DNA from: Dicyema japonicum
Taxonomy: Eukaryota > Animalia > Dicyemida
NCBI GenBank assembly: GCA_011109175.1
Contig: RDEW01000046.1
Span: forward strand, 15,545 to 79,544
DNA length: 64,000 bases
Direction: 5' to 3'
Under the pieces are notes generated by a model that was not told the origin of the DNA, searched no databases, and was given only the letters and a program-made list of their open reading frames with translations. Every line of letters starts with the position of its first letter. Position 1 is the stretch's first letter. Below are positions 1-52,768 of this stretch, piece after piece. The position numbers and the translations under genes were made by a program.

Positions 1-525
1 AAGAGAGGAGAATTCAATAGGGTTGTTTATATATTTGATTGTTTGATAAAAATTGCGATGTCTTGAATCGAGAAAGAGATTTAGAAGAGCCACCTGGTGC
101 TTCGAATTGAATAGAAGACAATTTTGTTAAATATCATGGAGAAAATAAGAGAGCAGTCTTTAATTTCAAAGCAGGAATTTCTTCTTTTTTGGAGTAACAT
201 TTAGAATTAGGTTCAGTTATATAAAAGTAATTTCTTGATTTGCAAAAAAAGCGACTGGATTAGATAACTCTTTTGTTTATTAACGAAGAAGGAAACTACT
301 GATACTATCAATCTGCTTCCGAATTGGAAAGCATCTGGAAAATATTAAAACTTTTAAACATGTTACAGAGGGCTTCCAATGCTAAATTTAGGCATAAATC
401 ATTTGGTAAACTTTTTTGCAATTGACAAAATTCAAAATTTTTTAAGTTTTTAAAATATCGTCTTAGTTCAAATAATTAAATAAATTTTGATACGAAAAAA
501 ATTGAAGACGGGTTACGAATTAAAA

Positions 526-1839
526 TTAGTTAGTTAGAGAGATTAATGCAACGCTTTCCTGTATTTCATTTTGTGATTTCAGTTTGATAAAAATTGCGAC
601 AATGAGACATATAAATATTATTCCAACAACTCCACACACGATTCCAATTATTTGATTTTTCGTCAATTTTTTTACGGCTTTACTTTCAAACGAAATAAGT
701 TTTTCAAAACTTATTGTATCTAAATTTCAGTCGAGTTTAATAACCATCTGAAACATAATGATGTTTAATCGTGGATTTTTTGTGTTTAATTTCTGTAGAT
801 GATTGTGTTTCAAAGCATCCTTCATCTAAAATTCAGTCGGATTTATGTACCATCTCCAATAAATTCAAAAATCAAATCATCACGGAAAAATTGTAATTTA
901 AAAGATGAAATTTTGATAGACACATTTTTATAGTTTTGTGAGATGGATCAACAGTGATTATATCCTTGCATTTTAATTTGTTTAAATCGCTTTTTAAGCG
1001 AAACACATTTATCTTTTTTATACCCAACACAAACAGAAAATCTATTAATACGATATTTATTCCCATTTTGTTTATATGCCGTAATATATATGTTAGAATA
1101 ATCACCACGCAATATATATTTATTGTCACTATAATCTTTTGTTAAGACATTATAGTAATAATCACTAAAATGTTCATTTGTTATCTACTTATCAATGCAA
1201 ACGTGTACAATTTCGTTATTGTCAATATATGATATTTTGATAATTCCACTTATTACTGCTCGGATTCTATTTTGGTTAAATAAAAACCAAATAGGCGTAT
1301 TTGGGTCATTATTTGGGTTACAGTCATTAGCTAAATAAATTTTAATAAAAACCTTTTCCATTAAAATAATACGAAAGACTTTTATCGTGATATTGCAACT
1401 TGATTGAATAAATTGTAACAGATATATCATTTGAAAAACTAATATAAGCATAACCACATCGGTAGTAATCCCCATATTTAGTTTTAGGAATCTTTGTGAT
1501 ATTCGTATATCGCTTACCACCTTAAGTACAACAAAAAACGTACCATAATCAATTTCTGTTACTAAGTCAATAGTATAAAACTCATTGTAGAAGTATGGAA
1601 TAAGTTTAAATTTTATGAAAGTGAAAGAAAACAAATCGGTACCATTAGTTTGCCATACATCTATATGTTTCTCGGAAAGTAACATTGATAAACTATATTC
1701 CTAAAGTTAACGAAATATATACTATTGAAGGATTCTTGTAAATTACATATGAATCAATTAATATATATCTCTCATCACATTTTATTTTGACTATTTTGCT
1801 AAACAGAATAATTATGATATAATGAATAGTTCTGTTCAT
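526..1839 (-). CDS. Orphan type I membrane protein, about 405 codons over 5 exons (signal peptide, ectodomain, C-terminal TM helix), with an in-frame TGA at 948-950
   Basis: Manual splicing: ATG at 1839; GT-AG introns 1701-1722 (22 nt), 1165-1188 (24), 826-850 (25), 720-744 (25); TAA at 526-528. Exon lengths 117+512+314+81+194=1218 nt keep frame. N-terminus MNRTIHYIIIILFSKIVKIKC is signal-like; IIGIVCGVVGIIFICLIVAIFI followed by KLK is a TM helix. No family recognised. Confidence 0.7.
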
Positions 1840-2229
1840 GTAGTCTAAATTTTATTAGGTCAAATTTTATTTAAATTTTTATCATGATTGTTTGATATAA
1901 TTATATATTAAATATCTATGATAAAAGATATTTCATTACCATTTTTTATTAAATATCTTTAATTATTGAAAATATAGTTAACATTATCAATTTCTCTCCT
2001 TAACTATTCCTCCATTACTCAACAACGTGAGAATCTTGAAAAATAATTCCAGCTTCATCACTATGCGGCTCCGAATCCTATCGTTTTACTAATCAGCTAT
2101 ACAAGTCAGTAAAACACGTAAATTTAAGAATAAAACCCACGTCACTCCAAATTCTTATTAAAGAGTACCGATTGGAATCAGAAAAGCTGTGGTACTATGA
2201 TGGAACACAGCAAAAACCTCTCATTCCTG

Positions 2230-4480
2230 TCGAGGTCTCTTAATTGATTGTCAGAAGTGTTGTCGGAAGTGTCGATCTAGGTCGTCCGCGGAAGGGTTTC
2301 TCGCAACTGTCAAAGTAATCTTCCATCGCTTTGTTAGCGGGTGCGTCCGGGTTCATTCTTAGTACATGCCCAAATAGCCTCCACCGGGCGTCTATCACAT
2401 CCTTGCTGATGTAAGAACACATACACTTGTTATAGATACCAGTGGTTGATATTCTACGTGGCCACTTCATTCCGAGTAAACTTCTTAGTTGCCTTCTATG
2501 GAACGAATCCAGTTTCAATAGTTCGTTGAAGGAACTTCCCCATGTCCCAGCGTTATACAGTAGGATCGGTTTCACGAACGCGTTGTAAAGCCTGCATCTG
2601 ATGTCAATTCCAAGACTTTGGCCCTTAGCCATACTTTATTCAGTTTAGCCATTGCCGCATTTGCCAGTGTTTTCCTCCTTAGTACATCTTCAGCGTCTCC
2701 TAGTTAAGAGCCGAGCTTATTAATACGTCTCCATCTTTCATGAGTAATATCGTCTTCTCTTTTGATTTCCGTAATTTCAGTTTTGTTAACATTTACGCTG
2801 AGAAACCATTTCTCAAGCTCCGCAGGTGCATTTTCTAGCAGGTGTTGGAGTGCGGTCACGTCCCTTGATACAAAATCCACATCATCCACATAAGATGTCT
2901 CTTCTATGTCTCCTATATAGCATTTACGGAGGTCGCGGAGTGCAGATTCAAGGTATATGGTGAATAGTAAAGGGCAGAGGGAATCACCCTGGGGTGTCCC
3001 AATCGTTGTTTTGAAACTGCGGGAAGTGGCTCCTTCTGACCTCACAGATAGTCTTGTGTTCGAAAGTAGTAGTCTAATTATCCTAACCGACGATTCATCC
3101 AATATTTGCTCAAGCACATTCATCAGTTTCTGTCTGTTTATTGAGTCGAAAACTCTGGAGAGATCTATTCCCAACACGGTCGTTGCGCTCTTGAATCTTT
3201 GGTGCGTTGCGCAACGCCATCTTTGGCTCCATACAATGTCTGCCGTAGATCTCCCTTCTCGGAACCCACTTTGATTTGCTGGCAGGTATAGATCTGCCAC
3301 ACCCTTTATCCGGCTTAGTGCAACGTTTGCCAGCACCTTGCGTATCGAATTCAGAAGTATTATCGGGCGGAGATTTTCTACTGGTCCTTTTGATTTGTTC
3401 GGTTTTTGTATAAGTATTAATAGTCCATTTCCAAGTCCTAGATCGGTATTATTTTCAAAGTCGTCATTTAGGGTTTTTGCAATTGTGTCGCTAAGTTTTT
3501 TTGGCCCATATTTTAGGAGCTCAGGGCTTATATTGTCCGGCCCAGCACTCTTGTTGTTCTTCAGTTTATTTATCCCTAATTCCACCTCTTCCACTGTGAT
3601 TGGGATTTTTAGCGCTTTTGCTTCTCCTTGGAAAGGGGAAAGTCCTTATTTTCTTTATTCAACAGTGTTTCGAAGTGTCGTGCAATCAATTCTGCTTTTT
3701 CTTTCGGGTTACCCACGAATTTTCCATTTTTGTCTTTGATGTGAAGGATGTTTTGTCCTTTCTTTGTCCGCAGCAGCCGCAAAGCCGCATACATCCTTGA
3801 ATTGTCTTTTAGGCATTCCACATCTTTTAATAAAGATGTAATAATTTTTCGTGAGTGTTTTCTGTTCATCTTTTTGATTTTCCACTTTAGTTCCCTTTGT
3901 TGTATATTAAGCTCTTTTTTTTAATCTCGTCTGACGTGTTTGCCGCTTTAAGCCGTAGCTCTCTGCAATGCTTTACCATATCTGGCACGTTCAGGTGGTG
4001 ATCCAATTTTAGGGCGTGATGATTTCGGACTCCAAGGCATATATTGGCCGACTTGGAGATTGCCTGTTTTGTTTGATCCCACAGAGTTTGTACTTATGAT
4101 TCCGGTGAGGTTTTCTCCATAAGAGTCTCGATTTGTTCGTGATAATTAGCTTTACAAGTGGGCTCTAACCACAATTTTTCTGTCTGAAAGTATATATTGG
4201 GCCTTTGTCTCGCCTTCTTCGCGTTTTCAATGTATTTTTTCCCAGTCAGGTGCTTTTTACACAAAGTTTTGCAATGACGATCCTTTGGTCGCTGTCGGTT
4301 GTTGTTCCCTGGGAGGAACGTGCATCATTTATCAGGTGTTTATCAGAATTTTGGCAGATAATTTTTAGCTGTAAACATAAGCAGCTAAAATCGGTATTAT
4401 GAATACTATGAGCAGCATGACTGATACTCACATGATTTTCCATAGAGACACCTTCCTCAGGTAGGCTGGAGTCAATCAAA
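2230..4480 (-). mobile_element. RTE-clade non-LTR retrotransposon, copy A (5'-truncated, frameshifted)
   Basis: RT motifs SAGPDNISPELLK, NLRPIILLN, QSGFREGRSTAD, GTPQGDSLCPLLF, YVDD and RTE-type C-terminus LYNAFVKPILLYNAGTW...RWRLFGHVLRM in ORFs 2240-3594. Highly similar to the copy at 43834-46685. Confidence 0.9.
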
Positions 4481-4559
4481 GACTCCGATCTCGTACTTCA
4501 CGGAAATCTATTTTGCCATTACCATCTGACACGACACGTTTGAGAGCATCCACCACTAC

Positions 4560-6110
4560 ATCCATTTCTTGATAGTCCTTGTTACTTAAAATTTAAATAA
4601 AGTCGTCCCCAATTTGAGTGACTTGGAACATGGAATTTGTTCAACCAGTTTTGGTATTGTGTGAGTGAGGTATTATTATTAGTATTGAACCAGAAAACCA
4701 CAGTCATATCCAAAATAAACAAAATTCAGGTGATCCCAGCCTCCGCATCTTTTCTCGGTGTTCCGACTGCGTTCCTGTGCATTTCCGATATGGACGGGTC
4801 CGCATACTCGAGTCCTTCCAGGGGCACAGTACCAGTCGCCTTTATCATATTTTCTAGGTTTCTGGGCAGGATTTCCACACGGGAATATTTTTTAGTAGGT
4901 TTGCTGCCTTCACTTGAATGTTGCAGATCTTGTCCAAATTCGTTGCAGCAAGGTTAGATCCCCAGACATTACATGCGTATCTTATTGTAACCTCGATGAA
5001 CTGTTTGTATATGACATCCAGTCCACTCAGATCTTTTTTGTCTCTTAGGTTTCCCAAGAACGCCTTCAGGAAGTTGATTTTCCTCGTACAAGTCAATAAC
5101 ATATTTTCGACATGTTTTGTAAAGGTTAAGAAAGTGTCAAAGGTAATTCCCAGGATTTTCTGGTATTTGTTTTGCGAGATTTTCTTCCCATCCAGTGTGA
5201 CGTCAATTGATACTTTTCCTAGTCTTCTGTTTGTCGTGAATAGGGTCAACACCGACTTCTCCGTGGTAGCAGTCAACTGATTTCTCCAAAGCCATAAGCT
5301 TAGTTTATTCAGATTGTCCTGTACTCTTCTCGTTGCTTCGATAATACTCACATTTCTCGAAGCAATAACTATATCATCCGCATACGTTAATAACATGTCA
5401 TCGTCCACCTGTTGGAGTGGCAAGTCATTCATCATAGGGTTAAACAAGAGCGGAGATAATGGGGAACTCTGAGGAACTTCATTTGCTAATAATCTCGATA
5501 CAGAACATCGATTGGCATAGTGTACTCGTCGACCACTCAAGAAATTTAAGATTTGCGGATTTGCGTCAATGTTCGACGAATATATTTTGTGCGTGATAAT
5601 TTTCCTCGAAACCGAGTCAAAAGCCTTCTGGATATCAATTGAGCCTACAATCGTCTTTTTCTGTCCTGGTATTTTGTTAAGGCCATCTGTTATGAACTCC
5701 TTTAATGTATTTAGGTGTGTGATAGTTGATCCTCACTCTTTAAAACCATGCTGAAATCTGGCATCCGGGAAAGAATATCGTGTGTGTCATAACCATCTTT
5801 TCTAGGATTCTTGTCTGGACGCACAAGAGCGACAAAGGCCTGTAAAAAGCAAGGTCTTCCCTTAGTTTCCCAGGCTTCAGTATTGGATGAATATTCGAAA
5901 GTTGAGCGCTCGGAGTGAGTTGATGAATTTCTCAATAGTTCAATCTCTTTAAAAATACGCGTTACGATTATGTACACATATTTTGTGTTATCTTTTAGCC
6001 ATTAATTAGTCAGAAGGTTGGGGTGGTGTCGTATCTACTCAGCTTCCTGATTGTTGAAGGCCCTTGTTTCCTTCTCCTGAGCATCGATAAGATGGCAGAC
6101 TCAGGATACG
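4560..6110 (-). mobile_element. I/Jockey-like LINE, reverse transcriptase fragment
   Basis: ORF 4854-5540 contains VPQSSPLSPLLFN, YADDIVIAS, KILGITFD; upstream IDIQKAFDSV read in a shifted frame. Confidence 0.75.
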
Positions 6111-6339
6111 TTAAAAACCTAAGGTTTTAAATAAAAGAATCGTCTAGTCACATAGGATTCGGATTTGAATCCAGTTTAGTTGTAATTGGGAGAACTTGGG
6201 GGATATCCATCACAAGCTACATGTGTAAAATGATAGTACATTCTATGTATGATCTAGTGATAATATTATGTCTTTGACTTTCGCATTTTTCGACAAAGAA
6301 TGCATATGTGAACGTGATTTGACTTTCGCATTGCTCGCC

Positions 6340-6440
6340 AAAGAATGTATATGTACGAGATTCGCTTAAATAACCAGCAGCTCTCACAGGGTTCTCCTGA
6401 TCGTGTAGAAATCCAGTTAGCTGATAGATTCTCAAATATG
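6340..6440 (-). mobile_element. CRE-like retrotransposon C-terminal fragment
   Basis: DQENPVRAAGYL resembles the DPRE..GYLFQRLS motif; DNA is similar to 59180-59240. Confidence 0.45.
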
Positions 6441-6454
6441 TTTCGAAAGACAAT

Positions 6455-6632
6455 ATCGAAAAAAACAATAAATATTTTTTACTGAAGAAGGAAACTATTT
6501 TGAAACATTCAAAAAATTGTCAACTGTCTTTTAAAGCTCCACAATCGAAAAAAACAATAAATATTTTTTACTGAAGAAGGAAACTATTTTGAAACATTCA
6601 AAAAATTGTCAACTGTCTTTTAAAGCTCCACA
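6455..6632 (+). repeat. 89-bp direct tandem duplication
   Basis: atcgaaaaaaacaataaatatttttt...aaagctccaca starts at 6455 and again at 6544. Confidence 0.9.
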
Positions 6633-8199
6633 TAAACCAAGTTTCCAAAACTTGAAAAAAATTTGGTTGAATGGATGGAAGTAATAGAGTCTGAAGGTAC
6701 TTTTCGAATTTCAAAAAGAAATCAAAAAAATAAAAGTAGTTAATCAAAATTCAATAAGGGTATTTGAATGTTAGGATAAGTAATATCCACCATTATATAA
6801 AAACAACTGTAGTGATTTACTATACAGCTCAACTCTCGGTATATAGGGCAGTACAAGTTTATTAATAGATTATCTACTATAGATGTGGAACGGGATTCCT
6901 TCACTTTTGTAAAGAAAACAGAAACTCACTTCTCATATTCCTGTTCCAGAAAAAAGAAAGTCGGTGCTCAGAGGTTTTCTTCCACAATCGATTTCCTGCA
7001 AAAGCGCGAAAGAAGGCGCTTCCGGACAATGCTAGATACAATGAGGACCACAAACGTAAAATATTTGGGGTGAAGTGGGATCATCTAACTGTCCGGTGAA
7101 ATGAAAAATTCCAGATCATGGTAACATCAACCTAACTTTAACGAGATCCAGACGAGTTCCAACATATCTGCAAGCTTTTCCCATCTTCTACATTACTGGT
7201 TTTCATGAGAAAATATGGGGGGAAGCCATTATCAGTTGATTTTGATTCCTTTTTCCGTTTATTTAGTTTAACAAAATTGTCCGCAATACCAAATATGTTT
7301 AATTGAGTCATCCAGAAATAAGACTAAGGCGAAAATCCTCGATTATGTTATCTTCTTTGACAACTAATTAAATGAAGAGATCGGACGAAAACTAGTGATT
7401 TGAAAGAATATTCTCGTCGTAGTGACAGCAAAAGAGTAATCAGCTACATTTAACAACTACTATCTTAACGAGGTCAGTGTGCATGAATGTGCCTCGTGAA
7501 CTTTTCTTAAGGATCACTCGAAAAATCTTCTTTTCCACGGAACAGATAAATTGGAAGTGAATTAGGTAAAACTCTCACCAGCATGTAGCTGGCTGATGTT
7601 TGTTTTTCGTAACGTGTTTACTTTTGAACTCTTCGACCACTGTTTGTACTGAGCATTTCCTACATTCGAGTGATCTTAAACGACTTTACTGTCGACGAAC
7701 ATAGAACTGAATAGTCAGGTAATTGAATTTTATGACTGAATCGACCAAAGTGGATAAGCAGAGAGGTCACAAATTTATAATCATTTCTGTGTTTCAGTGA
7801 AGAACCAGGAAACTCATTAGGAGAAGGAGTTACCTAGGAGAAATCCCGATTGACTCTTAAAAAAGATACTTCAACCGAGTTCTAAAGGAATTCTAAAAGA
7901 AACTTTCATAAGTCTTTCGTGTTAAAAATCAACACCATTAAGCATACAAAATTATTTATAATTTTACTAAAAGGGAAATTGCTCGAACTTACGAGAATTT
8001 CAAGATAAAAAAATACGACAACCTCTCCACAAGATTCCATATACAGCCCGTTTTTGTAGAGATGAGTAAAGCCTTCGGGTCCAAACGGTCCCTTTTCTAA
8101 GATCGCTTGGGTAAATGATTTCAAAAGTTAGTAATGAGCGTCAGGAAACCAAATGGTTGCTCCAAAGGATTTTTATGGTAGTTGTCAGGAGTAACAGCT

Positions 8200-8450
8200 A
8201 TTGAACCATCCGTCAAATAATTGACTTTTTTTAAAGAAAATATACAATATAAAACCAACCCAAATAGGGGTCGGCACTCCTGGGGATGTGAAGCAGCAGT
8301 TCATGCTGTCCGTAAATTTACTAAAACGAGCGAGAATATTTTTCGTGTAATCTTCAAAATTGATATCAAAAACGCCTTCAACACGATAGGACGTGATACA
8401 ATTATTGAGGATTATTTTACATTCAACCCATCGATGTACAATTATGTTCA
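8200..8450 (+). mobile_element. CRE-like retrotransposon RT fragment
   Basis: GCEAAVHAVRKF...KIDIKNAFNTIGRD matches the CRE-clade GCEAAVH...DFxNAFN RT signature. Confidence 0.65.
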
Positions 8451-8652
8451 TACCTCATGGAAAACATTCCAGCCTGGTCTACTTTCATGGTATTTAGCTT
8501 CTCAAAAAAACGAATTGAAAACATCCGAGAACGAACTTCAAGAACTGAGAAAAACGATTCGATGCAAAAACAAGTCGATAAATTGAGAGTTTATAGTCTC
8601 ATCATGTTAGAACATTATATATAAAAATCGATAATTTTACATACGCGCTTGG

Positions 8653-9075
8653 AGGAAGTAAAAAGGAGTTGCAAGTAACATAGAAAAATTTGGCCAAAGT
8701 CAAGGTCGACCCCACCAATTTGGGGACAAAGTCAAAGGAGCTATCAAATGTGTAGAAATGTCATTTTTTTTATATAAAAAAACAATGTCTCCTTCATTTC
8801 TAGGCGACAAAGGAATTAAGTGATAAGATCTAAGATTCGTGTAATCTTAAAAAAGATATTTTTCTGTAANAGGAAGTAAAAAAAGAGTTGCAAGTAACAG
8901 AAAAATTTGGCCAAAGTCAAGGTCGACGCCACCAATTTGGGGACAAAGTCAAAGGAGCTATCAAATGTGTAGAAATGTCATTTTGACTTAGAATGAAAAA
9001 AACAATGTCTCCTTCATTTCTAGGCGACAAAGGAATTAAGTGATAAGAGATAAGATTCGTGTAATCTTAAAAAAG
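8653..9075 (+). repeat. About 219-bp tandem duplication with an N at the junction (probable assembly artefact)
   Basis: ggaagtaaaaa...agttgcaagtaac unit starts near 8653 and 8872; lone n at 8870. Confidence 0.8.
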
Positions 9076-9188
9076 ATATTCTTCTGTAAAATCTCAAATT
9101 TCTCAATGAGATGGTCACAAGAATATTTTTTCAATATTAAAGTTAGCAAGCTTCTCAAGTGAATTGTAGACTTGACTAAAAAGAGTAA

Positions 9189-9494
9189 TAACAATAACAG
9201 TCTTTTCACGAGAGCCATAATATTTATAGCTCCGCATAGGCAGGACACACACTTTATCTAAGTAAAGAACAGTTAATTTTAACTAATCGTAGAACCAAAA
9301 AATGATCTTCACTTTTTTTTCTTGTGTGTGGGTCCTTTCTAGACAATCCAGTTCCGCAGTGAATATCCGGCCCACTCGTCAAACCCTTTTAGCATCGTAG
9401 ATGCGTGGAACCTTACACCAGGTGAATAGCAGCGAGAATCGAACCCGTAACCTAAGTCACTTTAGCCTGACACCGAACCACTATTCCACCCGGC
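9189..9494 (-). mobile_element. tRNA-derived SINE, subfamily 1, full length with target-site duplication
   Basis: Head GCCGGGTGGAATAGTGG (A box) and GGTTCGATTC (B box), shared core, tail ...ctatgcggagctataaatattatggctctcgtgaaaag; direct repeat ctaaaaagagtaa at 9176-9188 and 9494-9506; near-identical copies at 41483 and 53435. Confidence 0.9.
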
Positions 9495-10472
9495 TAAAAA
9501 GAGTAACTTTTGATTAAATAAAAGTAAAATTAGTCTGATTGGTGTTATCTCATATTCTTACTCCCCCGAAGCATTCGTTCATTCTTTTGCTGGTTTTTAT
9601 GAACTCAGAGTTTAGCTTGTTCTATATTACCGGATCAAATTCCTACTATCTATTTGTCCCCCATAATTTAGAACTTCAACCTGATTACCTGCATGTGCGT
9701 TATACCTTCTCTCATGTTTCCTTATTGATGTTCAGTCTGCCTTTATAATAATTTTGATTTTTTTGTGGCGAGATATCCAACACTTAAGATCTCCTCACTT
9801 TGACCTCCTTTTCCTTCAACCTACTTTTAATTAAAAATTCAACCTCTTGTAGGCAAGAATGATCAGTCTTGATGCCATAGGAAGGACACGTTGACTATTT
9901 AACTAATATGCTAAAACTAAATTCAATGTAAAAAAATCATAGACAAAACATCGTAAAAGATGATAGCTTCTTTGGGTCATAAACAACGTCAAAATATCTG
10001 GACTTTTGTGCAGATATCACAAAAAATATATCACAATCTGACAGCCATCGGCCAATCATTCTGGAATGAATGCTTCAAGATTCAGTTATGAAAATAAAGT
10101 ACAGTTTGATGCACCAACACGGATGACTTCATAACTATAATTGGAGATAAAAACGTATGTACTTGTGTGGGAAATCAAATTAATGAATTGATTATTTACA
10201 CTTGGTTTTAATAAAGAAATCCTTGAGGAGACTTTGAATGGAAAAGAAGGTTGTCAATTAATTAGTTATTAGTTTAGTTTTTTTTCTAACTCAATCTAAA
10301 AAAATCCTTTAGACACGAATTCAATAATAAGAATCAGGAACCGATCTCCAAATTAGATGAGGTCGAAGACCTGTTTTATCAAAATAAGGGTAAAAGTGAT
10401 GATGTAAATTAAATATTAATTTGCAGAGAAAAGTTGTAAATAAAGTAAACAAAGGTAATAATATTAAATCAA

Positions 10473-10880
10473 TCATATTGTTTCTTTAAGAACAAATCGT
10501 CGATGCTGCTCTTCAGGGTACACGTGGACGAATGTTTTGAATATCTTCAGTCCAGAAATGACAGGCTCGTAGAGAGGACTGTCTTCCAATGGTTTTAGCT
10601 GCTCACATGAAAATAGAACACGTCCATCAGTCATCGCAGATAACGCAGATGTTCTTCTATTCAAATGAACCTAATTTGAATAGCACGTGGTAACATTTAG
10701 TCCGGGGTACCAGTCCAGTCCTCTCCCTTGTGTTACGAGTACTGAGTGCTTCAAAACGAATTGTCCTTCCAATACTTTTACTCCACGATTTTTTCTTGGA
10801 CGGCGTTTACATTGAATTCCGCGATTTGCAGCAAAGCGGACTAATTCTTTTGTGAATGAAAATGAAGGGAAAAACCGCAT
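10473..10880 (-). CDS. MRPL27: Mitochondrial ribosomal protein L27 (bL27m)
   Basis: One 24-nt GT-AG intron (10671-10694) joins two ORFs: RGVKVLEGQFV...LVTQ...WYPGLNV...LSAMTDGRV...KTFVHVYP...FVL, collinear with animal MRPL27 (GIKKMEGHYV...TQR...WHPGAHV...KTFVHVVP...FKL). Confidence 0.9.
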
Positions 10881-11079
10881 TTATAACTCACAATACTCTC
10901 ACCACAAAACAAAATATTTTGAATTTTTTATTAAAATCACCATTTAAAATTATTTTCAATTATAATTAAATAAAATGTATATTCTCCACCAAACAAAAAT
11001 TGAAACACGTTTATGGTTGGTTGAACGTCACGTAACTCGCCAAACTGGAGACATTTTAAAGAAAAGAGTTACACTGCCC

Positions 11080-13270
11080 CTATTTTACAAGGTGGATTGA
11101 CAAGGACGGACTGTCTCTGTGTGGGGACGTCGAATCGAACCACGGACCCCTAAAGATCTTGCAAATAAGTATAAACGGGATCAAATGTAAGATTTTCGAA
11201 CTCAGAAACCTTATGGAGAAATATAGAATTGATGTCCTTCTATTACAGGAATTCAAACTCAGAAGTGCGAACACAACTCCAAAATTTCCTGGATGCTCAG
11301 TTATCCGCAGAGATAGATGTGGAAAATTTGGGGGAGGCTTACTAACTATCTTACGAAACGGGATCCCTTATGAAGATATCACCAAATACGTTTACAACCG
11401 CCTCCAAAATCATGAAAGTATCAAAATTCTGGCTACAAAAATCCAACTCCCAAGGTTACGTCTTACTCTGATCAATTCATATCTACTTCCTTTATCATCA
11501 GCCACTTGCCCAAAACTTTCGTCGATCAGCTCACTAAAGAACGTTCTTATTTGCGGTGACCTAAATGCAAAATACCTGCTCTGGCTGATGGTCAGACGTC
11601 AAACAGGCGGGGAGACGTGCTAATCGAAGAATTGGGAACCTTTTGCATCCTAAACGACCCTAACTGTCACAAAAGAACCCCCTCAAGACAAAATGATAAA
11701 CCATCATCCCCTCACGTTTCAATCGCGTCTCCCTTTCTGGCTTCTTCAATTTCATGGAGCGTGAAATACGAAACTATGAATGCTCATAATCCGATCATTT
11801 TACAAATAAAAACAAGATCAAATTATAGAAGGTCACTCACTTTGATAAATTACAAAAGTACAGTATAAAAGGTCTGGAACAAAATCAAGTCTATCAAAAG
11901 GTCTTCTGATGAACTGCAAAATTGGATATCATTACAACCAAACACGTTAATGAAATACTATGATTACATAGCTCATAAAAATTACTCCAAAGAACACCAA
12001 GTACTCTTAAACAGAATAAAACTGAAAGGATCATACATGTGGACCATATTTACGGCGAAGGACGTCTAGTGGGCAATATCAAAGACCCGAAACTTAAAAA
12101 CCCGAGGTCCAGACAATATTTCTACAACGGAACTAAAGCATATAGAACTTCTTGCTTTAGATTTAATTGCTTACATATTCACAATGTCAATAAATATTAA
12201 CATTATTCCGGATGTCTGGAAGAGATCATACATCAAACCGATCTTGAAACCAGGAAAATCCGAAAATGACCCCTCTTCCTACAGATCAATCTTCGAGAAC
12301 TGGATTTTTTTACTTCCCATTCAGATTTTATGGATGGCCTTGAGTGTGATATTGAAAGGTCTCTGCTTCTACAACGCGGGTAACTGGAATTGCCTCATTA
12401 TTCAGTCTCTTCGAGTGAAAGAAACCTATGGCTAACTGAAAGTAACTACCAAAACGATGTCCCAGGGAATCGTCAGGTTTGTTGATTTGATGCAGAAATC
12501 TAAGGCGGAGCAGGACAAAAAAAAGAAATTGTAATAAAACTGCCTAATCCTCTCCTATGTCGACGATATCATTCTTGCCTCCAAGGACAGAACCATTCAA
12601 TCAGCGACTCAGTCCGCTCAACAAACGCTTGAAAAGCTGGAACTATGGCTCTCAAAGCGGAGACTCGACGCATCAGCAACAAAGTCCTCTGTCACGCTGT
12701 TTACCACTTACAAAAGACAGCTCTGTGTCGAACCAAAAATCTTTATGAAGAACGAGGCTATTCCTATTAGCAAAACACCGAAGATTCTGGGAGTCACCTT
12801 TGATCAGGGACTCATTTTTATCCGACATATTGAGAACATAGTAACTTCTCTGAGGAAAATGAGAAATTTAAAAGACCTCTCAAAAACGCTTAGAGACCAA
12901 ACTGGTTGCCTTGTCACGATTTATGAACAATTTATCCGACCCACGATGACGCATGCAAGTCCTTTGTGAGCAATGCAGATTTCACGATCCTTTTCATTGA
13001 AACTATCCGCAATCGAGGAGACCGAAATTGGACCAGATTACAAAATCCAGCCCATTGAAAATTTCTTAATCGAATTACAACGGAAACTCTTAAAGGAGGC
13101 TAGTTTACCGAGCTGCCCTCTATTCTATACACTATCGAAATATCTACAATCATACAAAAATTTTTAGCCCATGCTATGTCCAATGAGAAAAGCTGTACAG
13201 GGTTCTCGACCCCACCGGACTCGTCCTCTCTTTTGTCGGTCTGGGATCACTTAGTTAGATGAGAATTTTT
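11080..13270 (+). mobile_element. I/Jockey-like LINE ORF2 (APE endonuclease plus RT), degenerate
   Basis: QISINGI...DVLLLQE, ICGDLNAK, WKRSYIKPILKPGK..PSSYRSI, YVDD, PKILGVTFD; 3' motif gggatcac at 13243. Confidence 0.85.
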
Positions 13271-13912
13271 CTTTGATCCAGTGATCCAGGAGGTAATAAT
13301 AATCTCCAACTAACAAGATTAGAGATTTTTAAATCAAATTAAAAAATCAAATAGTTTTTGGTAAATTGAGATGAAATTAAATATGTTACAAGCGTGATTA
13401 TTCACTAAGAAATTTGAAATTATGAACCCCAGTGACTTTAAAAAATGATTAATAGTATCTCTAATTTAAAATAAATTACTTAGATGAATGATCGTGGGAT
13501 GTCTTTCCATAGGTTAGTCCTTCCCTCTCAGGGAAGGCCAATGAATATTCTCTGAATTCAATTAAAAGATTTATTTTTTAATTAAACTATATAAGCTTCA
13601 ATGTTAATAGTAGTTTATCATCCTCTAAGTTCAGATATACCGGAAAGAAGTTAAGAGATCTGAGTTACATGAATCTCATGACTCCTCTAAAGAACTGCTG
13701 AAGTAAAAAGCAGAACGGAATCTTTCGACCAGATATATAGCGATGTAGGAATCAAACACACAGCTAATCTAGACTCGAGCGAAAACATTTGAAACCACCC
13801 AAATAGGTAAAGAATAATTAAATTAAAATTTATTCACAAATCAATTTATAATTATTTATTATTGAATAATCTTAAATAAAAAATTAAAAATGGACAAAAT
13901 AAATAAATAAAA

Positions 13913-14867
13913 ATGGATAATCCCGATGTTGTAATCTCATTAACTTCATCAATGGTAAGAGATCTAATGAGCCTAAACAGTGTTGGTTTCAATATTAGTT
14001 TTAGTTCTTTACGTCGTCCTCCCTATCCTCAATAATGAATCCTGACAACACTATCAACCCATCTGCATTGATAGCCAACGTAACTCTCATTTGTGGCTGG
14101 ATTGGGAGACAACGAAGCGACTCAAACAACATCAAAGAGTAATTTCATTACCTATTTTTCTCAGTTTGGTCCCTCGACTGGAGTCAGACCTTAAACATGC
14201 CAATTCCGTGATATATCGTCTGAAGGATGAGGGGGAAGCTTTGCGTAAGGAGCTGGTCTCTCACCAGACGAGCAGTAAGCTTCTGGAGGGGAAAGTGGGG
14301 GAATTAGAACGGAAACTGAGTAGTGAGCGCGATGAGGCACATCCTTAGATTATTATAGAGAGCGAAGATGGAGGGGATATTTTCCCAGTCGCTTTCTCTT
14401 CACAAACATGACTCCAGGAAGAAGGAGATCGAGATCAAGAATATGAAGGACCGAATGGACAAGATCATATCGAATAGGAACGGAATTACTTTCCCTTGTA
14501 TGGCTTCAAGGTTATCTTAGCTAAAAAGAGTAATCGGGGGATCGAACCTTCTAGGAAACAGTGGGGAAAGGTCAGGCCTATTTCTGAGGATGTCACGTGG
14601 TCGGGGGAGAATGAGAAGATTACCAAGATTTCATGGGGGTCTGTGAATGAGAGAATCAATCAGATACTTCATGAGAATGGGGAGTTGAGAAAACTTGTAG
14701 GGAGATGTGTGGATAGAATGGGGGTGAATTTGTCTCCCCAAATGCTAGAAATGCCTGTGTCTGTCATTGTATCTTCTCTGTGTGATGATAATGACCAGTC
14801 TTTCGTCAGTAATTTGGATTGCAGCACAGAATTCTTTTCTGCTTGTGATAATAGTGTTGATATATGA
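13913..14867 (+). CDS. SSX2IP: SSX2IP/ADIP/Msd1-like coiled-coil protein (afadin- and alpha-actinin-binding family)
   Basis: Introns 13982-14004, 14139-14164, 14337-14358 (GC-AG) and 14498-14520 give an open frame: RLESDLKH...RLKDEGEALRKE...SSERDERAKME...HKHDSRKKEIEIKNMKDRM...RKQW...QILHENGELRKLV...LSPQ, matching SSX2IP KLGSDMDH...KNEKDE...HDMKRKERE...LKERL...QILMENAELKKVL...LSPQ. Confidence 0.75.
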
Positions 14868-15204
14868 TCTTGATAATTTATATGTTCTTTTTTCGCCTTA
14901 ATTTATTCAACTTTTTATATCTGTGGTAAGTGAATTTATTCAGGAAATTACAAGTGAAAACAAGGACTACATAACTGTGATCCTGATGTCTCTGCAGAAC
15001 TCTCAATTTGCCTCTGTGCTCCTCAGTCGAGCCCACAAAAGTGTGTTATGTAGTTCTTGTTTTTTTGTGATAAGCGGATAACCGATGCTTTTTGATTTTG
15101 TGAGTACATACCTCACTGTGGAACCGGATTGTCTACAGAGACTCACACGTTACAAAAAAGGAGTTAAAAACATTCTCTGCCCCTCTCAACGATTACTGTT
15201 CTTC

Positions 15205-15290
15205 ATTTTAGATAAAGTGTGTATCCTGCCACACGTAGGTGCTGGAGATATCATTATGGCTCTCACGAAATTGCTAATATTATTTTTTTT
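15205..15290 (+). mobile_element. SINE 3'-tail fragment
   Basis: ataaagtgtgtatcctgcc...attatggctctcacgaaa matches the SINE tail at 53690-53745. Confidence 0.65.
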
Positions 15291-15439
15291 ATTTTCCTAG
15301 TATTAAAAAACATAAAACTTGTGTTCGATTTTCCGCAAAATGCATCGCCCGGGGACGAGAATGTCCCCAGGAGGATAAAGTCTATCGGTCCTTTTTCGGT
15401 TGGCATTAGGTGCCTCCTGGGCGTTTCCAATTCCTTTTG

Positions 15440-15980
15440 AATTGGTAGACCACATATGCCGATGACATAATTGTCGCATCTAGGGACGTAAATGTCATAC
15501 TAAAGAAAGACTATAAGGAATACTAAATAACAAATATGGATGGTTGTGCGAAAATCGATTAAATGCATGTTCCGGAAAGTAAGCTGTCACTCAATTCACT
15601 AAGAATAGAAAGATGGGAACGCAAACAATTGATGTCACGTTAATGAAGTACCTACACCACAAAAGAAATCGCAGAAGATACTAGAAGTAACTTTTGATAC
15701 TCTCCTTTCTTCTCAGTCCGTGGAATCTATCATATCAACCTGTGCAAAGAAGATCAATTTTGTAAAAGCCTTCCTTTGGAACTGTTGAGGAATTTATCCG
15801 CCAGGTGTCTGGACCCTCTACAAGGAGTATATCGAGCCAACAATAGGCTATGCATGTGCTGCGTGGGGATCTAACCTGGCGGCAACTAACCTAATAAAAA
15901 TTCAAGAGGTCAAAAGCAATCAATTTACTGGAAAAATATACGGATAGAAAAATTGTCCCCAGAACATTTGAATCTATCGT
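15440..15980 (+). mobile_element. Degenerate I/Jockey-like RT 3' fragment
   Basis: YADDIIVAS-like and KILEVTFD-like remnants with many stops; DNA resembles 4854-5540. Confidence 0.55.
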
Positions 15981-16009
15981 AGATTCAACTGAAGGCGATT
16001 TCAGAGAAG

Positions 16010-17700
16010 GAAGAATAAAATACCCCCCGTCATAGAAAATGTATGGAGCCACGGTCGGAACATCGAGCAAGTATGTAGCGAGTTAGTAAGAGTCCTAGAG
16101 GAACACAAAGGATATAAGTATCTGGATGTTACCGAAACTCCAAAGTCCCTTATAATGCCTGAGACAAAGCGACAAATTACTGAAGGCATTCGTAGAAGAG
16201 CAGCGTTGTTATGTAAGACGTCTCTAAATGCAAGGAATTTGTCCCTATCATTAAATGAGTATGCTGTTTCGCTGCTAAACTACTACATAGGTGTTGTGGA
16301 GTTTGAGCCCAAAGAGTATGATGAGATGGATGTTATGATCCATGAAGTACTCAGAGAAAACCATATCCTTGTGCTGACTATATTTCCACCATGATGAATA
16401 CATCCGTGGACTGTGTGGAATAGTCCAACTAAGTGAGCGTATCCTAATGCGAATGCACGACACCCTGATAACTGGGTTAGTCTGTCTAGTATGAAACACG
16501 CCATAATAACGACCAGAAATCACGAGCAATTCACCTAGGCACTATCAGACCTTTTTTGTCTGCTAAAGATTGTGTTGATGATGGTGGGCTTGTAAATGTG
16601 AAGGCGTTGATCGAATTACAATATAATAATTTGATGGAAAAGATCAACTTAAAAAGCATTCATAAGGTCCTCTTCAGATATTTTAATAAGCCGCGTGGCG
16701 CCATGTGGTGCTGCGTGGTTAATTTGTTGAAGTTTTGTGTTTGCTTGTCTATTCCTCCTCTCTCTTCCTATTAGAGTGGCGCCCAGTGCCAGGCCGGCAC
16801 AAAAAAGGATCATTTGCTCTCCCCCACTCCACTGGAGGGGTTTCCACAAATGCATGTAATGGACGTCCTACCTTTTATGCTGATTCCCGATGGACTCTGT
16901 TTCTGTAGAAGTGGAAACTGGATACATTTAATTAGTTGTTTACTTTAACTTCTTTCTCGGTGTATTCGGGGTTAATAAATTAAATAAATTAATGGACAAC
17001 CCACATTTCGACCTTAAGTCGTCGACAATATGGCTAAAATACGGTGACAACTCACCTAGATCGGAGGCGCTGTACACGTATATGGAAGACCGCAATATTT
17101 TTTGGGGTCGATTAACAAATACATGTCCCCACTGTAAGTCAAGGAGCATGTCGGTTGATCATTTAGCCACTCGGTGCGGATCTATGATCTGCCACGACTA
17201 TGTGTGAAAGCATAACGAGGTAGTAAGGAGTCTTCATCTTTTACTATGCAATAAGTATGGTATTCTCCACATCAGAAAGTTGCGGACTCAGAAGGTGCAA
17301 TCTGTAGTAGAGAACACCAGGGTCCAATTTAAGGTAGACAGTGTTATCCGCATTTCGGTGCTAATCAAGCACAATAAATCGGACATTGTCGTACACGATA
17401 AGGAGTCTGGCCAAATCCTTATCATAGAAGTTGGTATTACGTCTCTAGACCGTTGCAGACTGTGGAGGTGAAGAAAAAAGGAAGTATGACTTGCTTGCAA
17501 GCGAAATGAGGAAATGTTTGGTTGCAAGGTCCTCGTTATTCCAATAGTAATGACGTGGTAAGGAATTGCAACAAAGTACCACAAGGGTTATCTGAAGCAG
17601 TTAAGGGTAGATAGAAAGCTTCAGTTTTATCTACAGTCAACTGTATTAAAGCGGACCCTAGAGAGCCTGACACTGGAGTATAGGAGGCAGAGCCGGCGAT
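16010..17700 (+). mobile_element. R4/Dong-like non-LTR retrotransposon 3' half (RT end, CCHC knuckle, REL endonuclease), degenerate
   Basis: YKYLDVTE, LNEYAVSLLNYYIG, DGGLVN, CPHC..SVDHLATRC, HNEVVRSLH, NKSDIVVHDK...IIEVGIT, IPIVMTW. Confidence 0.8.
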
Positions 17701-19539
17701 GCTATATGGGCAGAGGGTTCAATTGGACAAGGCGCTCTCGGAGTTGTTTCAACAACCACAATTGAACCTGCCTGAGGAGGTTGTGAACAGGCAGGCGAGG
17801 AAGGTTCTGATTATTAAATATTAACTTTTTATTGTTGGTTAAATAAAGTGGATTAATTGTATTTCTAGTATTTATTAGGTCGTGAGTTAAACAATAAATA
17901 AACTTATCTTTCTTGTCGAATTCTCACCATTTTCCGTTTATCTTAAAAATTTATAGTTTTCTAGTGTTTTTGACAGTCAACTCCTCATAGTTATCACGAC
18001 AATTTGATTCTTACTATTAATTTGTTTATCGGTTTTTTGACTATTTCTTATCTCGCAGCACAGATAAGCTGGAATTAAGCTGAAGAAACAGGGTATGGAC
18101 AGATTATTGACGATATGGTAAAAATACTTGTACACATTGACATGTTCGATTTAAGGGGTGTCCAAACGAAGAATAGACTTAAGATCCTTTAAATTTAATT
18201 ATTTATTTTTAGGCTTATTTTTTACATTACCTGAGTTCGATGGCGAGTAAAAAATCAAACTTCCTATTTTGTTCCCCAAGAATATTCATTTGATTCGTTG
18301 CTTAACTTCAGGGACAATAAATAAGAAGAACCTTTAATCAAGTTCATCGAACCTTCTGGTGAAAAAGCCACCTGATTAATTCAGACGAGATTTGGAATTA
18401 TCACAAATCTAAAAAACTAAGCAAGAAGGAACCGTTTATTGACAACAGACAGTATAGCAAAAAATATACATCTGCTAATTCTAAAAAATTAGAGAAAATC
18501 TAAAAACAAAAAAACAGCTGAATATTACTTCAGTGTTTAGATATTCTTTGATATAAAAGCTTATTGTCAAGATTGTCAACTCAGGAAAGTAAAATTAATA
18601 AAACGTCAATTTTTTAGAAGAGTGGAGGATTAGATAAGTTTATTAAAGTTAATATTTGATGGCGGATTCTAGATGTTTTCCTGTATTTGATGTTTTCTCC
18701 CATCACAGTCATTGAATTTGGTTAGTCATCAAACAGGAAATCAAAAAAGGAATCAGTGATCAACTTATTAACTACCGAAAACACAAAAAATAAGAGTTAT
18801 AGTATAAGTGATCCCTCTGACACGTACACTTCTTCTTACGGCTTGTTTTAGAATCCTTGATTGCATAAAGGAGAATCTATGACCCCAAGTATGATCTTCC
18901 ATTTCGAGAAGATACTCTGGAGATTTTACAATTTTAAGTAAATCTTGCTGTCATTCTCTCAGTTGATCCATGACAGGAAGAACATTTAACGTTTTCTATA
19001 ACTGCGTAGCAAGTGTCAGTAATAGGATTCTGATGAAGTTCTCAATCCCACGGGTTTGTAATGAACTGATATAAAGAGTAATCAATCTATGCTTATGATC
19101 AGTAAGACTTCTTTTTAGAGAAGCTTGAAGGGAGAGAAGCTAGCGAAGAATGCGAAGGAAATCTTGAAGCTGTCTCTAGTTGAGACAGTATAGCACAGAT
19201 GCTAGCGACTGGTCGACAGAAGAAGGAGTTGGCGGGAGATTTGCTTCGCTTCAAAATGTGGTTGATGAGGTATATTTTCTGCAGTAAATCTTGTTTTGAC
19301 AATTTGAGTTAGTGTTTATGTAATAAGAGGTCCCATGTGTTTTAATTCGTGAATAAATATATTATTCTTCCTCGGGAGTTTTTCATATTTCTGGGTCTAG
19401 AGAAAACATCTTTAGCCTCTTTATATACTTCCATTATGTTGTGGAAGGCGTTTTCTCTGGAGTTTCATCAGATATGTTAAGTAAAATTCCTTTAGGTTTA
19501 TAAACCTTCCCATTCACATCAGAGGACTATTGTCAAGTC

Positions 19540-21790: not shown

Positions 21791-22354
21791 AAAATAAACA
21801 AGTAGCAATGTCATGGTCCAGATGAGCAAAAAAACTCGACATGATTATGAAATTATAAACCAGCAATAGTTTCATTCAGCACAGGAAACTTGTGGGTTCC
21901 CCGTTCTCTTCTCACAAACGTAACGTTTTTTTACAAATGAAAAGATAGTCTGGGTTTCTTTACTACGCCCACCTAACATTAGTTCTGTTCATAATCATGT
22001 CGAGTTCTTTTTGTCCTTTGTGAGGGTTTGCTTGTCATGGTTAGAATGTCGAAACCCACTTATCCTCAGGTCTAGGCAAAACTCCCAACATAGTTCTGGG
22101 TTTCTTTACTACGCCCACCTAACATTTAGTTCTGTAAGTCCTTTGTGAGGGTTTGCTTTTCATAGTTTGTAAGCGTTGTCAGTCTGTCGAATGTTACCAG
22201 AAAATTGTGGGTACTCACACAGGGCCAACAAAGATTCTGGTAAATTTGAACAAGAAATTCCGCCCAAAATTTAAAATAAAAAACAGTTAATTTAAATAAT
22301 CTAATTAAATAAATTAAAAATAAAATTATAAAAAAAATTTAAAGTGCGGGTTAT

Positions 22355-24272
22355 ATGTTCCCTTCAGGACTCAATGATGAACAGAAACAAAGAAGTGAGT
22401 CGAACAGACTCAAAGCATTGGAGAGGTTACATGCCAAACGTCAACACCTGAATATCACAAAGACTACCACTTTTAGTATGAGCACACCAGACAAATATCC
22501 TCAGAACCATATCATTGTTAAATGTGATCTTTCAAAAACTCATATATTGCTGTCTCTATGGTCCGAGGACTCATTCAAGGCTGATTTCGAGTATAATCCT
22601 CACGTAATAGAGCTACTCAAGTCTCAGCCGCATAAGAGATACAGTTTTCTTACACTATTACTATAGATGCTTTTACAAAATGCTGGACATTCTCGATTCA
22701 GCACTACAAGACGATATGTTGCCCAAATTTGTGACAAATAGACAGCAATTTGAAATCTGAGTGTCTTGTGGAGGGAATTCCTATCAAAATAGTCGAAGAG
22801 TTGATCAACAAGTCCGGGACTTCTTTTCCTTGCACTCCTGAATGTCCCCTTTACTCACAACTGATGCCTTTTCAGAGAGAGTCTGTGAAGTTGTTTTTGT
22901 TTTACTTTTTGCCAGGGAATTTGGTAACAGGGGTGGAAGACTGCTTATTTCTGATGAAATGGGACTCGGCAAGACTTTCCAGACAGTCGACATCCTACTC
23001 CACTACAAAGCACACTGGCCTTCTCTTGTTGTGTGCCCTGCCTCTATGAAACACGTATGGCTTGAGGTTGGAGACTATTTTCAGTGGTAGCTTGTGAGGA
23101 AACTCCTTCCTTCAGCCTCTTGCAAACTCGGGACCGAAAAGAACGCCTCTTCGGCAGATATAATCATAATAAATTACGAAATATTGGGGAGAAAAACTGA
23201 GGTCACTAATTTTGGGATTCTTGTGGTCGACGAGTCTCACAATATAAAGAACACGTCGAGTATTCGATCAAAATGTGTCCAGAAAGCGTCCCGACAGGCA
23301 AAATACATCGTCCTTCTCAGCGGTACCCCGGCCCTCTCCAAGCCGAGCGAACTGTACGCCCAACTGAACGTCTTGAGACCAGATTTGTTTAGTAACTTTT
23401 ATGAGTTTGGCATGCGGTACTGCAATGGGAAGAAGGTTTGAAGTTATTATTACTTTTGACTACATGGGGACATGACTTTGGTGGATTATCTAACGAGACT
23501 GAACTCAGGGTCATCCTCAACAGCATCTTCATGATTAGGTGGTCCATAAATTCTAATTTAGACGCCTTAAGGCTGAGATTATCGACCAGCTCCCCATGAA
23601 GGAGCGCTTAAGAGTGGACTTAGACGTTGGAATATCTCAGAAGGAGTTTAAAGTTAAACATAAAATGACTCCCAGAAAAATTACTCAAAGCATCAAGATA
23701 AGGGATCTCTGTTAGAGTTTTTCAGTGAGATGACGATATTGAAGATATTCCATGTTTGGTAGATCAGTTGTATATAAAATAGTGAATATATTATCAAAAA
23801 ATTAAAGATTGTGCACAAACTGGTAATATTTGCCCACCACAAGGTCATGATTGAGTCACTCAGACGTTCACTCACGTGTGTTTGGAGTATTCTTAGTTTT
23901 AGTATTCGATCGTTGTCATTGATGGGTCCACCAGTTCGTTGAGTCGCTATAATTGTATTGATCAGTTCCAAAATGATGAAAACTGTCGAGTTGCTGTGCT
24001 TTCTCTCACGGCTGCCTGTACAGGAATTACATTGACACGTGCGAATAATTTGATTTTTGCTGAGTTGTCCTGGACTCCTGGGATGTTGGTGCAGGCTGAG
24101 GACCGTGTTCACCGAATAGGACAGATCAAACCTGTATTTGTCGAATATTTGGTTGGATTGGGGACTGCAGACGAGATTATCTGGTTTGGGTTTAGGTTAT
24201 TTTAGGCCGATAATCAACAAAAAGCTCGGAATCCTTAACAAAGTTGGCTTCACTGACCTCTCAAAATTATAA
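22355..24272 (+). CDS. SMARCAL1: SMARCAL1 (HARP) annealing helicase, SNF2 family, 11 exons
   Basis: RPA-binding motif LNDEQKQRSESNRLKALER; one HARP domain (FKADFEYN..VIELLK...TKCWTF); SDEMGLGKT, VVDESH, LLSGTPALSKP, IFAHHKVM, IDGST, AELSWTPG..VQAEDRVHRIGQ. Introns 22644-666, 22718-741, 22890-915, 23067-090, 23436-458, 23539-561, 23653-675, 23759-782, 23880-902, 24184-205. Confidence 0.95.
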
Positions 24273-50400: not shown

Positions 50401-50579
50401 TCTAATTGATTCCTCTGCCCATATAGCATTTCCTAAACTTGACCATATTTTCAAAATTTTTATTTAAAATTTATTTTTATTAACTAATTGTTTAAAATTT
50501 AGAATTTTAATTGTACTTAAATTGATTTATAACATATTTTTTATTTTTAAATTTAAATAAACTTTAAATCGAATCGTGT

Positions 50580-52512: not shown

Positions 52513-52768
52513 CTTTTTTGTCAATAATGGTCTTGTTAGATTTGTTTTAATGATGACTAACATAATAATAAATATTATGTGCGTAATTTTTAATTATATA
52601 ATTTAGTTTATGATTATTAGTATTGTAAAATAAAACAACTATTTTTATGGAAATAGTTCAATTAGCTACCCATCTTTTTTTGCTATCATATATTCGATGA
52701 CACGTAGGAAAGAAGGCTATTTGTGTCCACGGATTTTTTAGTTTTCAGCTGTGACGGGTTTTTAATTA

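Follow-up and report, generated by a model that had tools for sequence, protein, structure and literature searches.

A gene of seven exons on the minus strand of the window (by which we mean the whole stretch of 64,000 nucleotides of Dicyema japonicum DNA analysed here) carries one in-frame TGA, which lies between a predicted secreted ectodomain and its membrane anchor. The reading that we favour, to which we would give about an even chance, is that this codon is an ordinary premature stop common to a subfamily of genes, resulting in a truncated secreted product or in a dead gene. According to this reading, UGA-267 would act as an ordinary termination codon at which translation stops, with no bypass, and it would be common to most of the close paralogs. 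This copy, and probably also the abundant subfamily sharing the TGA, would yield a truncated, secreted 266-aa fragment of the ectodomain or nothing useful, while the anchor exons would represent the still-intact relic of an ancestral membrane protein of 389 aa. More speculatively, the TGA, which is part of a GTTGA donor-like motif, might go back to a former 3n micro-intron, as the fossil stop left behind when the AG acceptor was lost.

Structure of the gene and of its predicted protein

An earlier note on this DNA had described five exons separated by canonical introns of 22-25 nt. The description of the introns stands, all six of them being GT-AG, 22-25 nt long and spliced in frame, and the exons number seven instead. 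The features of this locus are as follows.

1839..526, minus strand: whole gene, 7 exons and 6 introns, with GT-AG introns of 22-25 nt
1723..1839, minus strand: exon 1, 39 codons, with the ATG at 1839-1837
1701..1722, minus strand: intron 1, 22 nt, GT..AG
1544..1700, minus strand: exon 2, 157 nt
1521..1543, minus strand: intron 2, 23 nt, GT..AG
1353..1520, minus strand: exon 3, 168 nt
1331..1352, minus strand: intron 3, 22 nt, GT..AG
1189..1330, minus strand: exon 4, 142 nt
1165..1188, minus strand: intron 4, 24 nt (3n), GT..AG, whose retention gives an in-frame TAG
851..1164, minus strand: exon 5, 314 nt, roughly double its neighbours in size, containing the in-frame TGA
948..950, minus strand: in-frame TGA, codon 267, in the context CAC TGT TGA TCC, next base U
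923..952, minus strand: candidate non-canonical 3n micro-intron, 30 nt, with GT at 952-951 and TG at 924-923
826..850, minus strand: intron 5, 25 nt, GT..AG, phase 1
745..825, minus strand: exon 6, 81 nt, which together with intron 6 forms a 106-nt module duplicating 931-826
720..744, minus strand: intron 6, 25 nt, GT..AG, phase 1, a paralog of intron 5
526..719, minus strand: exon 7, 194 nt, encoding a juxtamembrane stretch, the TM helix and a 19-residue tail, with the TAA at 528-526
586..651, minus strand: TM helix, 22 residues (IIGIV...AIFI), followed by a basic KLK
41..58, minus strand: exact 18-nt copy of the coding end of the TM helix (582-599)

The spliced CDS extends over 1173 nt in one frame, and the TGA at 950-948 is its sole internal stop, with the position and the context that the earlier note had given for it. 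The numbering of that note has to be corrected, since the codon is the 267th and not the 282nd, the product ending before it has 266 aa and not 281, and the readthrough product would have 389 aa plus the decoded stop, and not about 405. Its claim of some 120 open codons running through two in-phase introns into a TM helix was right, with 123 codons following the TGA. When the 369 nt after the TGA are shuffled by mononucleotide, only 1e-5 of the shuffles remain open, and 9 and 16 stops are found in the other two frames, which puts the openness of the downstream frame far above what chance would give. As for the helix, the Kyte-Doolittle mean over 19 residues reaches up to 3.35 within residues 345-375. 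This frame, kept open through two in-phase introns and ending in a TM helix, indicates that the product of the ancestral gene was a type I membrane protein with a length of about 389 aa. The anchor exons are, or were until recently, genuinely coding. The piece downstream of the stop is devoid of Met and has, for that reason, no independent AUG start, so that either ribosomes or splicing must pass the TGA for it to be expressed.

Apart from this TGA, no stops, frameshifts or lost splice sites were found in the gene. A single stop suffices to disable a gene, and thus the absence of other lesions is also compatible with a pseudogene. Retention of either intron 5 or intron 6 puts a TAA in frame. 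The 106-nt module made up of exon 6 and intron 6 is a tandem duplicate of 931-826, with an alignment score reached by none of 500 shuffles.

The protein begins with about 21 residues that, judged by eye, resemble a signal peptide, with a short n-region and the hydrophobic run YIIIILF. Four N-X-S/T sites are present, as well as seven ectodomain cysteines in the full-length reading. The part encoded before the TGA would comprise the signal-like segment and an ectodomain with cysteines and N-glycosylation sites, and the part encoded after it would add more ectodomain, the TM helix and, at the end, a tail that is short and basic. No Pfam domain was detected below E=0.02 when all eight exon pieces were searched. 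The query used in the search for homologs was the 171-aa longest stop-free ORF, which includes exons 2 and 4 in frame around a false middle. No homologs of this query were found in a word-indexed collection of 5.8 billion proteins, and the lone match among 1.84 billion protein representatives was discarded as a repeat artefact, its alignment falling in the stretch of the query that is out of frame. This unclassified protein appears to be native and lineage-specific (an orphan), and resembles a type I membrane glycoprotein.

The gene lies in a 2-kb island of 26% GC, compared with 32-42% in the remaining window. The GC content of the whole window is around 37%, and the genome of D. japonicum has been described as 67.5 Mb with 36.7% GC and 49% repeats rich in LINEs (PMC6736024). 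Reverse-transcriptase ORFs are abundant in the window, with PF00078 matches at 2707-3594 and 4857-5540. No paralog of the gene was found within the 64-kb window by tblastn with both protein pieces or by blastn with a word size of 7, the only repeat being the 18-nt copy at 41-58. This copy is followed by a short tail unlike that of the gene and by a TAA, and by eye it looks like the relic of the 3' end of another family member.

A high-copy gene family in the sequencing reads

The locus is contained in four sequencing runs, none of them labelled as RNA, which come from one sample, possibly the same one used for the assembly. The contigs built from them retain all six introns, with no joints of intron size, and because every intron is kept, the four runs behave as DNA. 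A total of 2,309 short contigs, 90-99% alike, stack on 1.8 kb (X1), with a summed depth of 20,000-390,000 across the gene and of 2,000-18,000 in the 3' flank (X1). Such a pile-up at such a depth indicates that this gene belongs to a family with a very high copy number. The published annotation of D. japonicum masked repeats above 30 copies (PMC6736024), and a family this abundant was probably masked as well, which may explain its absence from the protein collections.

Regarding the stop itself, the summed depth over 910-970 is about 187,000, and no majority variant appears at 948-950 among the variants listed, which do include majority variants at 914, 967, 968 and 999. The contigs lose rare variants, so that minority sense alleles at codon 267 could escape those listed. 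The abundant copies seem to share the TGA. Being the apparent majority state in the abundant contigs, the stop would be older than much of the amplification of the family, and we take it to be a genuine stop and an old one in this family. The earlier note had proposed a recent nonsense allele or a base-call error as its null model, and these data disfavour it. An error in the assembly or in the base call, or else a rare private allele (the true codon being, for example, TGG or CGA), is very unlikely in our view. It does find some support in the letters of the window at 330, 378, 452, 487 and 967, which differ from all contigs and indicate that the assembled copy is not exactly represented among them. 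Against it stand the depth over the stop and the lack of a majority alternative there among the listed variants, when neighbouring positions do have some, although the argument from depth is tempered by the four runs being a single sample, possibly the one assembled.

The summed depth is equally high in the exons on either side of the stop (about 200,000, X1), and it falls around position 600, past the TM helix, and not at the TGA. Among the variants listed, indels with a share of at least 5% are absent from the 372 nt after the stop, compared with five sites in the 260 nt of non-coding DNA that precede the gene; if the rate of that flank applied, the probability of finding none would be about 0.02 by our own arithmetic on these variants. 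The 24 coding variants listed comprise 8 synonymous and 16 non-synonymous changes, about 21% synonymous being expected (P=0.10). The earlier note had suggested looking at the evolution of the downstream part, where 3 of the 7 variants listed are synonymous (P=0.17), which is not significant with such a small count. At two joints, the contigs leave out 115 and 116 nt and bring in 9 and 10 letters, respectively, so that each of them is shorter by 106 nt. This loss equals the module of exon 6 plus intron 6, so that the copies of the family differ by whole exon-intron modules. The retained depth, the lack of indels, and the module differences fit a constraint on the anchor, and they also fit recent amplification together with unequal crossing-over.

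Genetic code, splicing and the fate of the stop codon

Three conserved genes of the window were rebuilt with the standard code and with micro-introns only, a permissive search for spliced ORFs, which yielded numerous spurious chains, being used just for locating genes.

22343-24195, plus strand: SMARCAL1-like helicase, SNF2 domain, E=2e-13
50557-52459, plus strand: SRRT/ARS2, E=8e-26
59849-60518: UBC-fold E2 (UBE2), E=3e-16

Together they contain 1,325 codons, with 21 TGG and no in-frame TGA, and 109 TGA off-frame. UGA as a sense codon was rejected, since all 21 Trp of the three genes are encoded by TGG and none of the genes has an in-frame TGA. As for the signals that could recode an individual UGA, an Rfam scan of 1-2100 on both strands at E<=5 found no SECIS element and only five noise matches (E 1.3-4.5), and no tRNA genes were found in the 64-kb window. 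A leaky stop context (UGA-C or CUAG) is absent, the actual context being UGA UCC AUC. No stable downstream RNA structure was found in a stretch of 109 nt that takes in the stop and the sequence beyond it. Its MFE is -10.8 kcal/mol, whereas its shuffles average -13.9 (z=+1.25), and 181 of 200 shuffles fold at least as well. UGA recoding is unsupported, genome-wide or at codon 267, and its recognised hallmarks were not found in the parts of the window scanned for them.

The window also holds a NIPA gene at 24771-25665, in which two in-frame TGAs were confirmed. Its three pieces are colinear with PF05653 (profile positions 103-200, 222-250 and 253-293), each TGA standing for about one profile position. 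One of them falls where the family profile has its conserved Trp region, and the other at profile position 251, which we take to be Thr or Ser in human NIPA2. Profile positions 1-39 are missing along with the 5' end of the gene, which by eye adjoins the apparent tail of a retroelement ORF, and the flanking ORFs are devoid of Pfam matches. One motif, presumably highly conserved in NIPA proteins, is eroded here by eye. This gene looks like a decaying copy or pseudogene; as such, it provides no argument for recoding, and it illustrates that plain nonsense TGAs do occur in this DNA. A general decoding of UGA as Trp by the nuclear code, or its decoding as selenocysteine in a Cys-Sec pair, strikes us as extremely improbable. 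The NIPA TGA in the conserved Trp region and its in-frame companion would speak for a code change, and the ...H-C-UGA-S... of codon 267 loosely recalls Cys-Sec redox pairs. However, the former is opposed by the codon counts of the conserved genes and by the presumed Thr or Ser at the second NIPA TGA, and the latter by the lack of any SECIS match in 1-2100.

Ultra-short introns with minimal splice signals have been described in D. japonicum (PMC13644364), and the 25 confirmed introns of the window measure 20-26 nt. Retention leads to an in-frame stop in all six of the confirmed 3n introns and in 8 of the 19 non-3n introns, so that a stop inside a 3n segment starting with GT is what an intron would be expected to look like here. 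Within 50 nt upstream of the TGA, the only GT is that at 952-951, in the motif T|GTTGA that overlaps the stop. The earlier note had stated that no AG lies close downstream, which is correct, the first one being found at 855-854, 95 nt away. The removal options that keep the frame are a 30-nt GT..TG segment (952-923), a 99-nt one ending at 854, which would leave a 3-nt microexon, and a 127-nt one ending at 826. In the 30-nt segment the TGA occupies bases 3-5, and the GT donor and the 3n length are present, while the AG acceptor is missing and the size lies outside the range. A precedent for its TG end apparently exists in the SMARCAL1-like gene, where, according to homology, a 23-nt GT..TG intron (23436-23458) would be needed to join ...RYCNGKK to TTWGHDF... 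in frame, the profile match extending beyond the alternative canonical donor.

These elements allow for a second reading, in which non-canonical splicing from the GT at 952 removes the TGA and gives rise to a membrane protein of 347 to 379 aa depending on the acceptor, and in which retention exposes the in-frame stop, leading to a truncated or NMD-targeted message. We regard this as unlikely. It would account for the conservation of the anchor exons, and it is consistent with the sole nearby GT overlapping the stop, with the three acceptor options all keeping the frame, with the stops carried by all six confirmed 3n introns, with the GTTGA/GTTTGA-type donors of confirmed introns, with the GT..TG precedent, and with an exon 5 of twice the usual size. 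However, 30 nt exceeds the range of the 25 confirmed introns, and introns of 99-127 nt would be exceptional for this genome. The 30-nt segment is also exon-like (LLR -1.2 to -1.7, 58% of exon windows being at least as intron-like), and its 3' end is A-rich, in contrast with the TTTAG or TTAAG that close the six introns of the gene. By a rough estimate, chance would moreover put a TG in frame, 18-33 nt away, in about 20% of the cases, and the SMARCAL1 precedent rests on homology. More unlikely still would be programmed readthrough, where most ribosomes would release the soluble fragment at UGA-267 and some would insert Trp, Cys or Arg through a near-cognate tRNA to produce the anchored form. 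UGA is the leakiest of the three stop codons. In favour of readthrough we can mention the frame open beyond chance, with its two in-phase introns and final TM helix; the Met-less piece, expressible only via bypass; the TGA apparently shared by the abundant contigs; and anchor exons as conserved as the upstream ones and indel-free among the listed variants. In addition, all three in-frame stops of the otherwise colinear genes of the window are TGA, which makes up about 24% of the expected nonsense spectrum, even though this count is biased by what the earlier note selected and includes two NIPA stops that are probably pseudogene lesions. Contrary to what readthrough would require, the stop has a UGA-U context, no CUAG-type motif, and no stem-loop or pseudoknot signal downstream (z=+1.25). 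The ectodomain cysteines would be odd in number (seven) unless Cys were inserted, while the truncated and the 30-nt-spliced forms have six, and the downstream synonymous excess is not significant.

Ordinary termination at UGA-267, the reading that we prefer, draws on the standard code of the neighbouring genes, on the absence of SECIS and tRNA genes, on the UGA-U context without downstream structure, and on the atypical nature of the splice option around the TGA (30 nt, TG acceptor, exon-like). The lack of a significant synonymous excess fits a fast-evolving or decaying family, and the absence of the family from the protein collections searched, the location of the gene in a 26% GC island, and the decay of NIPA were counted on the same side. 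Counted against it were the TGA as the apparent majority state in the family contigs, the post-stop exons kept at full depth and indel-free among the listed variants, and the relic at 41-58, which continues the TM frame. All these counter-points are compatible with selection on the anchor, for which the stop would have to be bypassed. The argument is soft in both directions, since contigs drop rare variants and the comparison covers the listed variants. In a more novel reading, this high-copy dicyemid family would retain the UGA purposely, so that each gene gave rise to a released and an anchored form, be it via low readthrough or via the regulated removal of a stop-bearing non-canonical micro-intron at GTTGA, a scenario that we consider possible but doubtful. 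The soluble/anchored switch or UGA recoding put forward in the earlier note is upheld in its anatomy, an ectodomain followed by an anchor, and not in its mechanism, given the lack of a sense UGA, a SECIS element, a leaky context, or a downstream structure.

Significance and known systems

If the stop is an ordinary one, the interest of this gene would lie mainly in annotation, as it would reveal an unannotated, repeat-like and intron-bearing family of orphan surface proteins, of a kind that repeat masking would conceal where annotated genes are few. If the stop is bypassed, this would be one of the rare instances of a single codon, or a tiny non-canonical intron, choosing between a secreted and a membrane-bound protein, and hundreds of gene copies would share this switch, in a parasite living on the epithelium of its host. 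The apparent use of TG as a 3' splice site in 23-nt introns is also relevant to intron recognition by a minimal spliceosome, and apparent TG acceptors warn against calling recoding events from DNA only in genomes with micro-introns.

Several known systems resemble this gene in part. Selenoprotein genes also have an in-frame UGA beside a Cys, whereas a SECIS is missing here and the protein is predicted to be extracellular, multicopy, and fast-evolving. Programmed readthrough in animals has been described for kelch and headcase in Drosophila, and for AQP4, MPZ, VEGFA and LDHB/MDH1 in mammals. Common to these cases and the present one is a UGA after which a long, conserved frame stays open and contributes a functional C-terminal module. 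However, they favour UGA-C/CUAG contexts or a downstream structure, both of them absent here, and their extensions are short peptides or targeting signals, and not a whole membrane anchor encoded across two introns. The mu chains of immunoglobulins are made from a single gene in a soluble or an anchored form, depending on whether a segment with the stop is removed. Nevertheless, that switch relies on competing polyadenylation and on a canonical splice, and no canonical splice is possible at codon 267.

Jaillon et al. in 2008 are said to have described 3n micro-introns bearing in-frame stops in Paramecium. The likeness to these lies in the six stop-bearing 3n introns (6/6) of the window, and in a TGA that overlaps a GT donor-like motif and around which a 3n segment can be drawn. 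Contrary to them, there is no AG acceptor here, and the in-frame option nearest to the size range ends in TG and measures 30 nt. Finally, premature-stop paralogs and pseudogenes in expanded families of surface proteins have in common with this gene a single nonsense codon, an otherwise intact multi-exon structure, a high copy number, a fast evolution, and no homologs outside the lineage. In contrast to such paralogs, the stop seems here to be shared and not private, and the anchor exons are preserved to the same degree as the other exons, which is unusual for a dead tail.

Architecture of the surface-protein gene and its 3' flank

The orphan surface-protein gene carrying the in-frame TGA contains an internal duplication that involves both coding and intronic sequence. 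Within 720-931 (-), a module of 106 nt, made up of intron 5 and the 81 nt of exon 5 that precede it, is followed by its tandem duplicate, exon 6 plus intron 6, and introns 5 and 6, at 25 nt each, are clearly paralogous. Among the contigs representing the high-copy relatives of this gene (hereafter, the family), some lack exactly one module, with a net loss of 106 nt.

A second repeat links the gene to its 3' flank. The end of the sequence coding for the transmembrane helix (582-599) recurs at 41-58 as an exact repeat of 18 nt, past which the same frame runs into a different short tail and then a TAA. This downstream copy, 541 nt beyond the gene, looks like a relic of the last exon from another family member. 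One family contig connects the 41-58 region with about position 384, and therefore carries a 292-nt indel in the flank.

Micro-introns and conserved genes of the window

The 25 confirmed introns, drawn from four genes of the window, range from 20 to 26 nt, with GTT donors commoner than GTA. Six of them have a length divisible by three (24 nt in each case), and every one of these six would introduce an in-frame stop if retained, versus 8 of the 19 others.

A likely departure from the canonical borders is found in the SMARCAL1-like helicase gene, where a 23-nt segment at 23436-23458 (+) starts with GT and ends with TG. The conserved blocks ...RYCNGKK and TTWGHDF... join in frame only when this segment is removed, and the canonical alternative costs 41 nt of conserved coding sequence; from homology, the segment is a likely non-canonical GT..TG micro-intron. 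In the SRRT/ARS2 gene, the model extends beyond the motif ...NFDFF (52400-52610 (+)), the usual C-terminus of this protein, and the true 3' end perhaps involves one further tiny intron.

In-frame TGAs are also present in a NIPA gene:

24774-25659 (-), NIPA gene (PF05653), colinear with the profile apart from two in-frame TGAs
25046-25044 and 24929-24927 (-), the two in-frame TGAs

Profile positions 1-39 are missing from this gene. It probably represents a copy in decay and not a case for recoding. By eye, a retroelement-like tail with no Pfam match adjoins its 5' end.

Genomic surroundings and copy number of the family

Several non-LTR retroelement copies directly adjoin the 5' side of the surface-protein gene (2240-5540 (-)), including those with the following domains:

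2707-3594 (-), RVT_1 domain of a non-LTR retroelement copy
4857-5540 (-), RVT_1 domain of a non-LTR retroelement copy

Related copies occur at many other places in the window, such as near 43.8-49 kb. The gene itself sits in an island of 26% GC (1-2000), all other 2-kb bins of the window having 32-42%, and its codons are far more AT-rich than those of the neighbouring conserved genes.

Over 600-1900, contig depths summed across the gene are 20-100 times those in the 3' flank, and are also greater than at the adjacent retroelement edge. Such high depth, an uncalibrated measure of copy number, means that the family comprises hundreds of copies or more, or is amplified. Extrachromosomal circular DNAs have been reported in dicyemids (PMC6543705).
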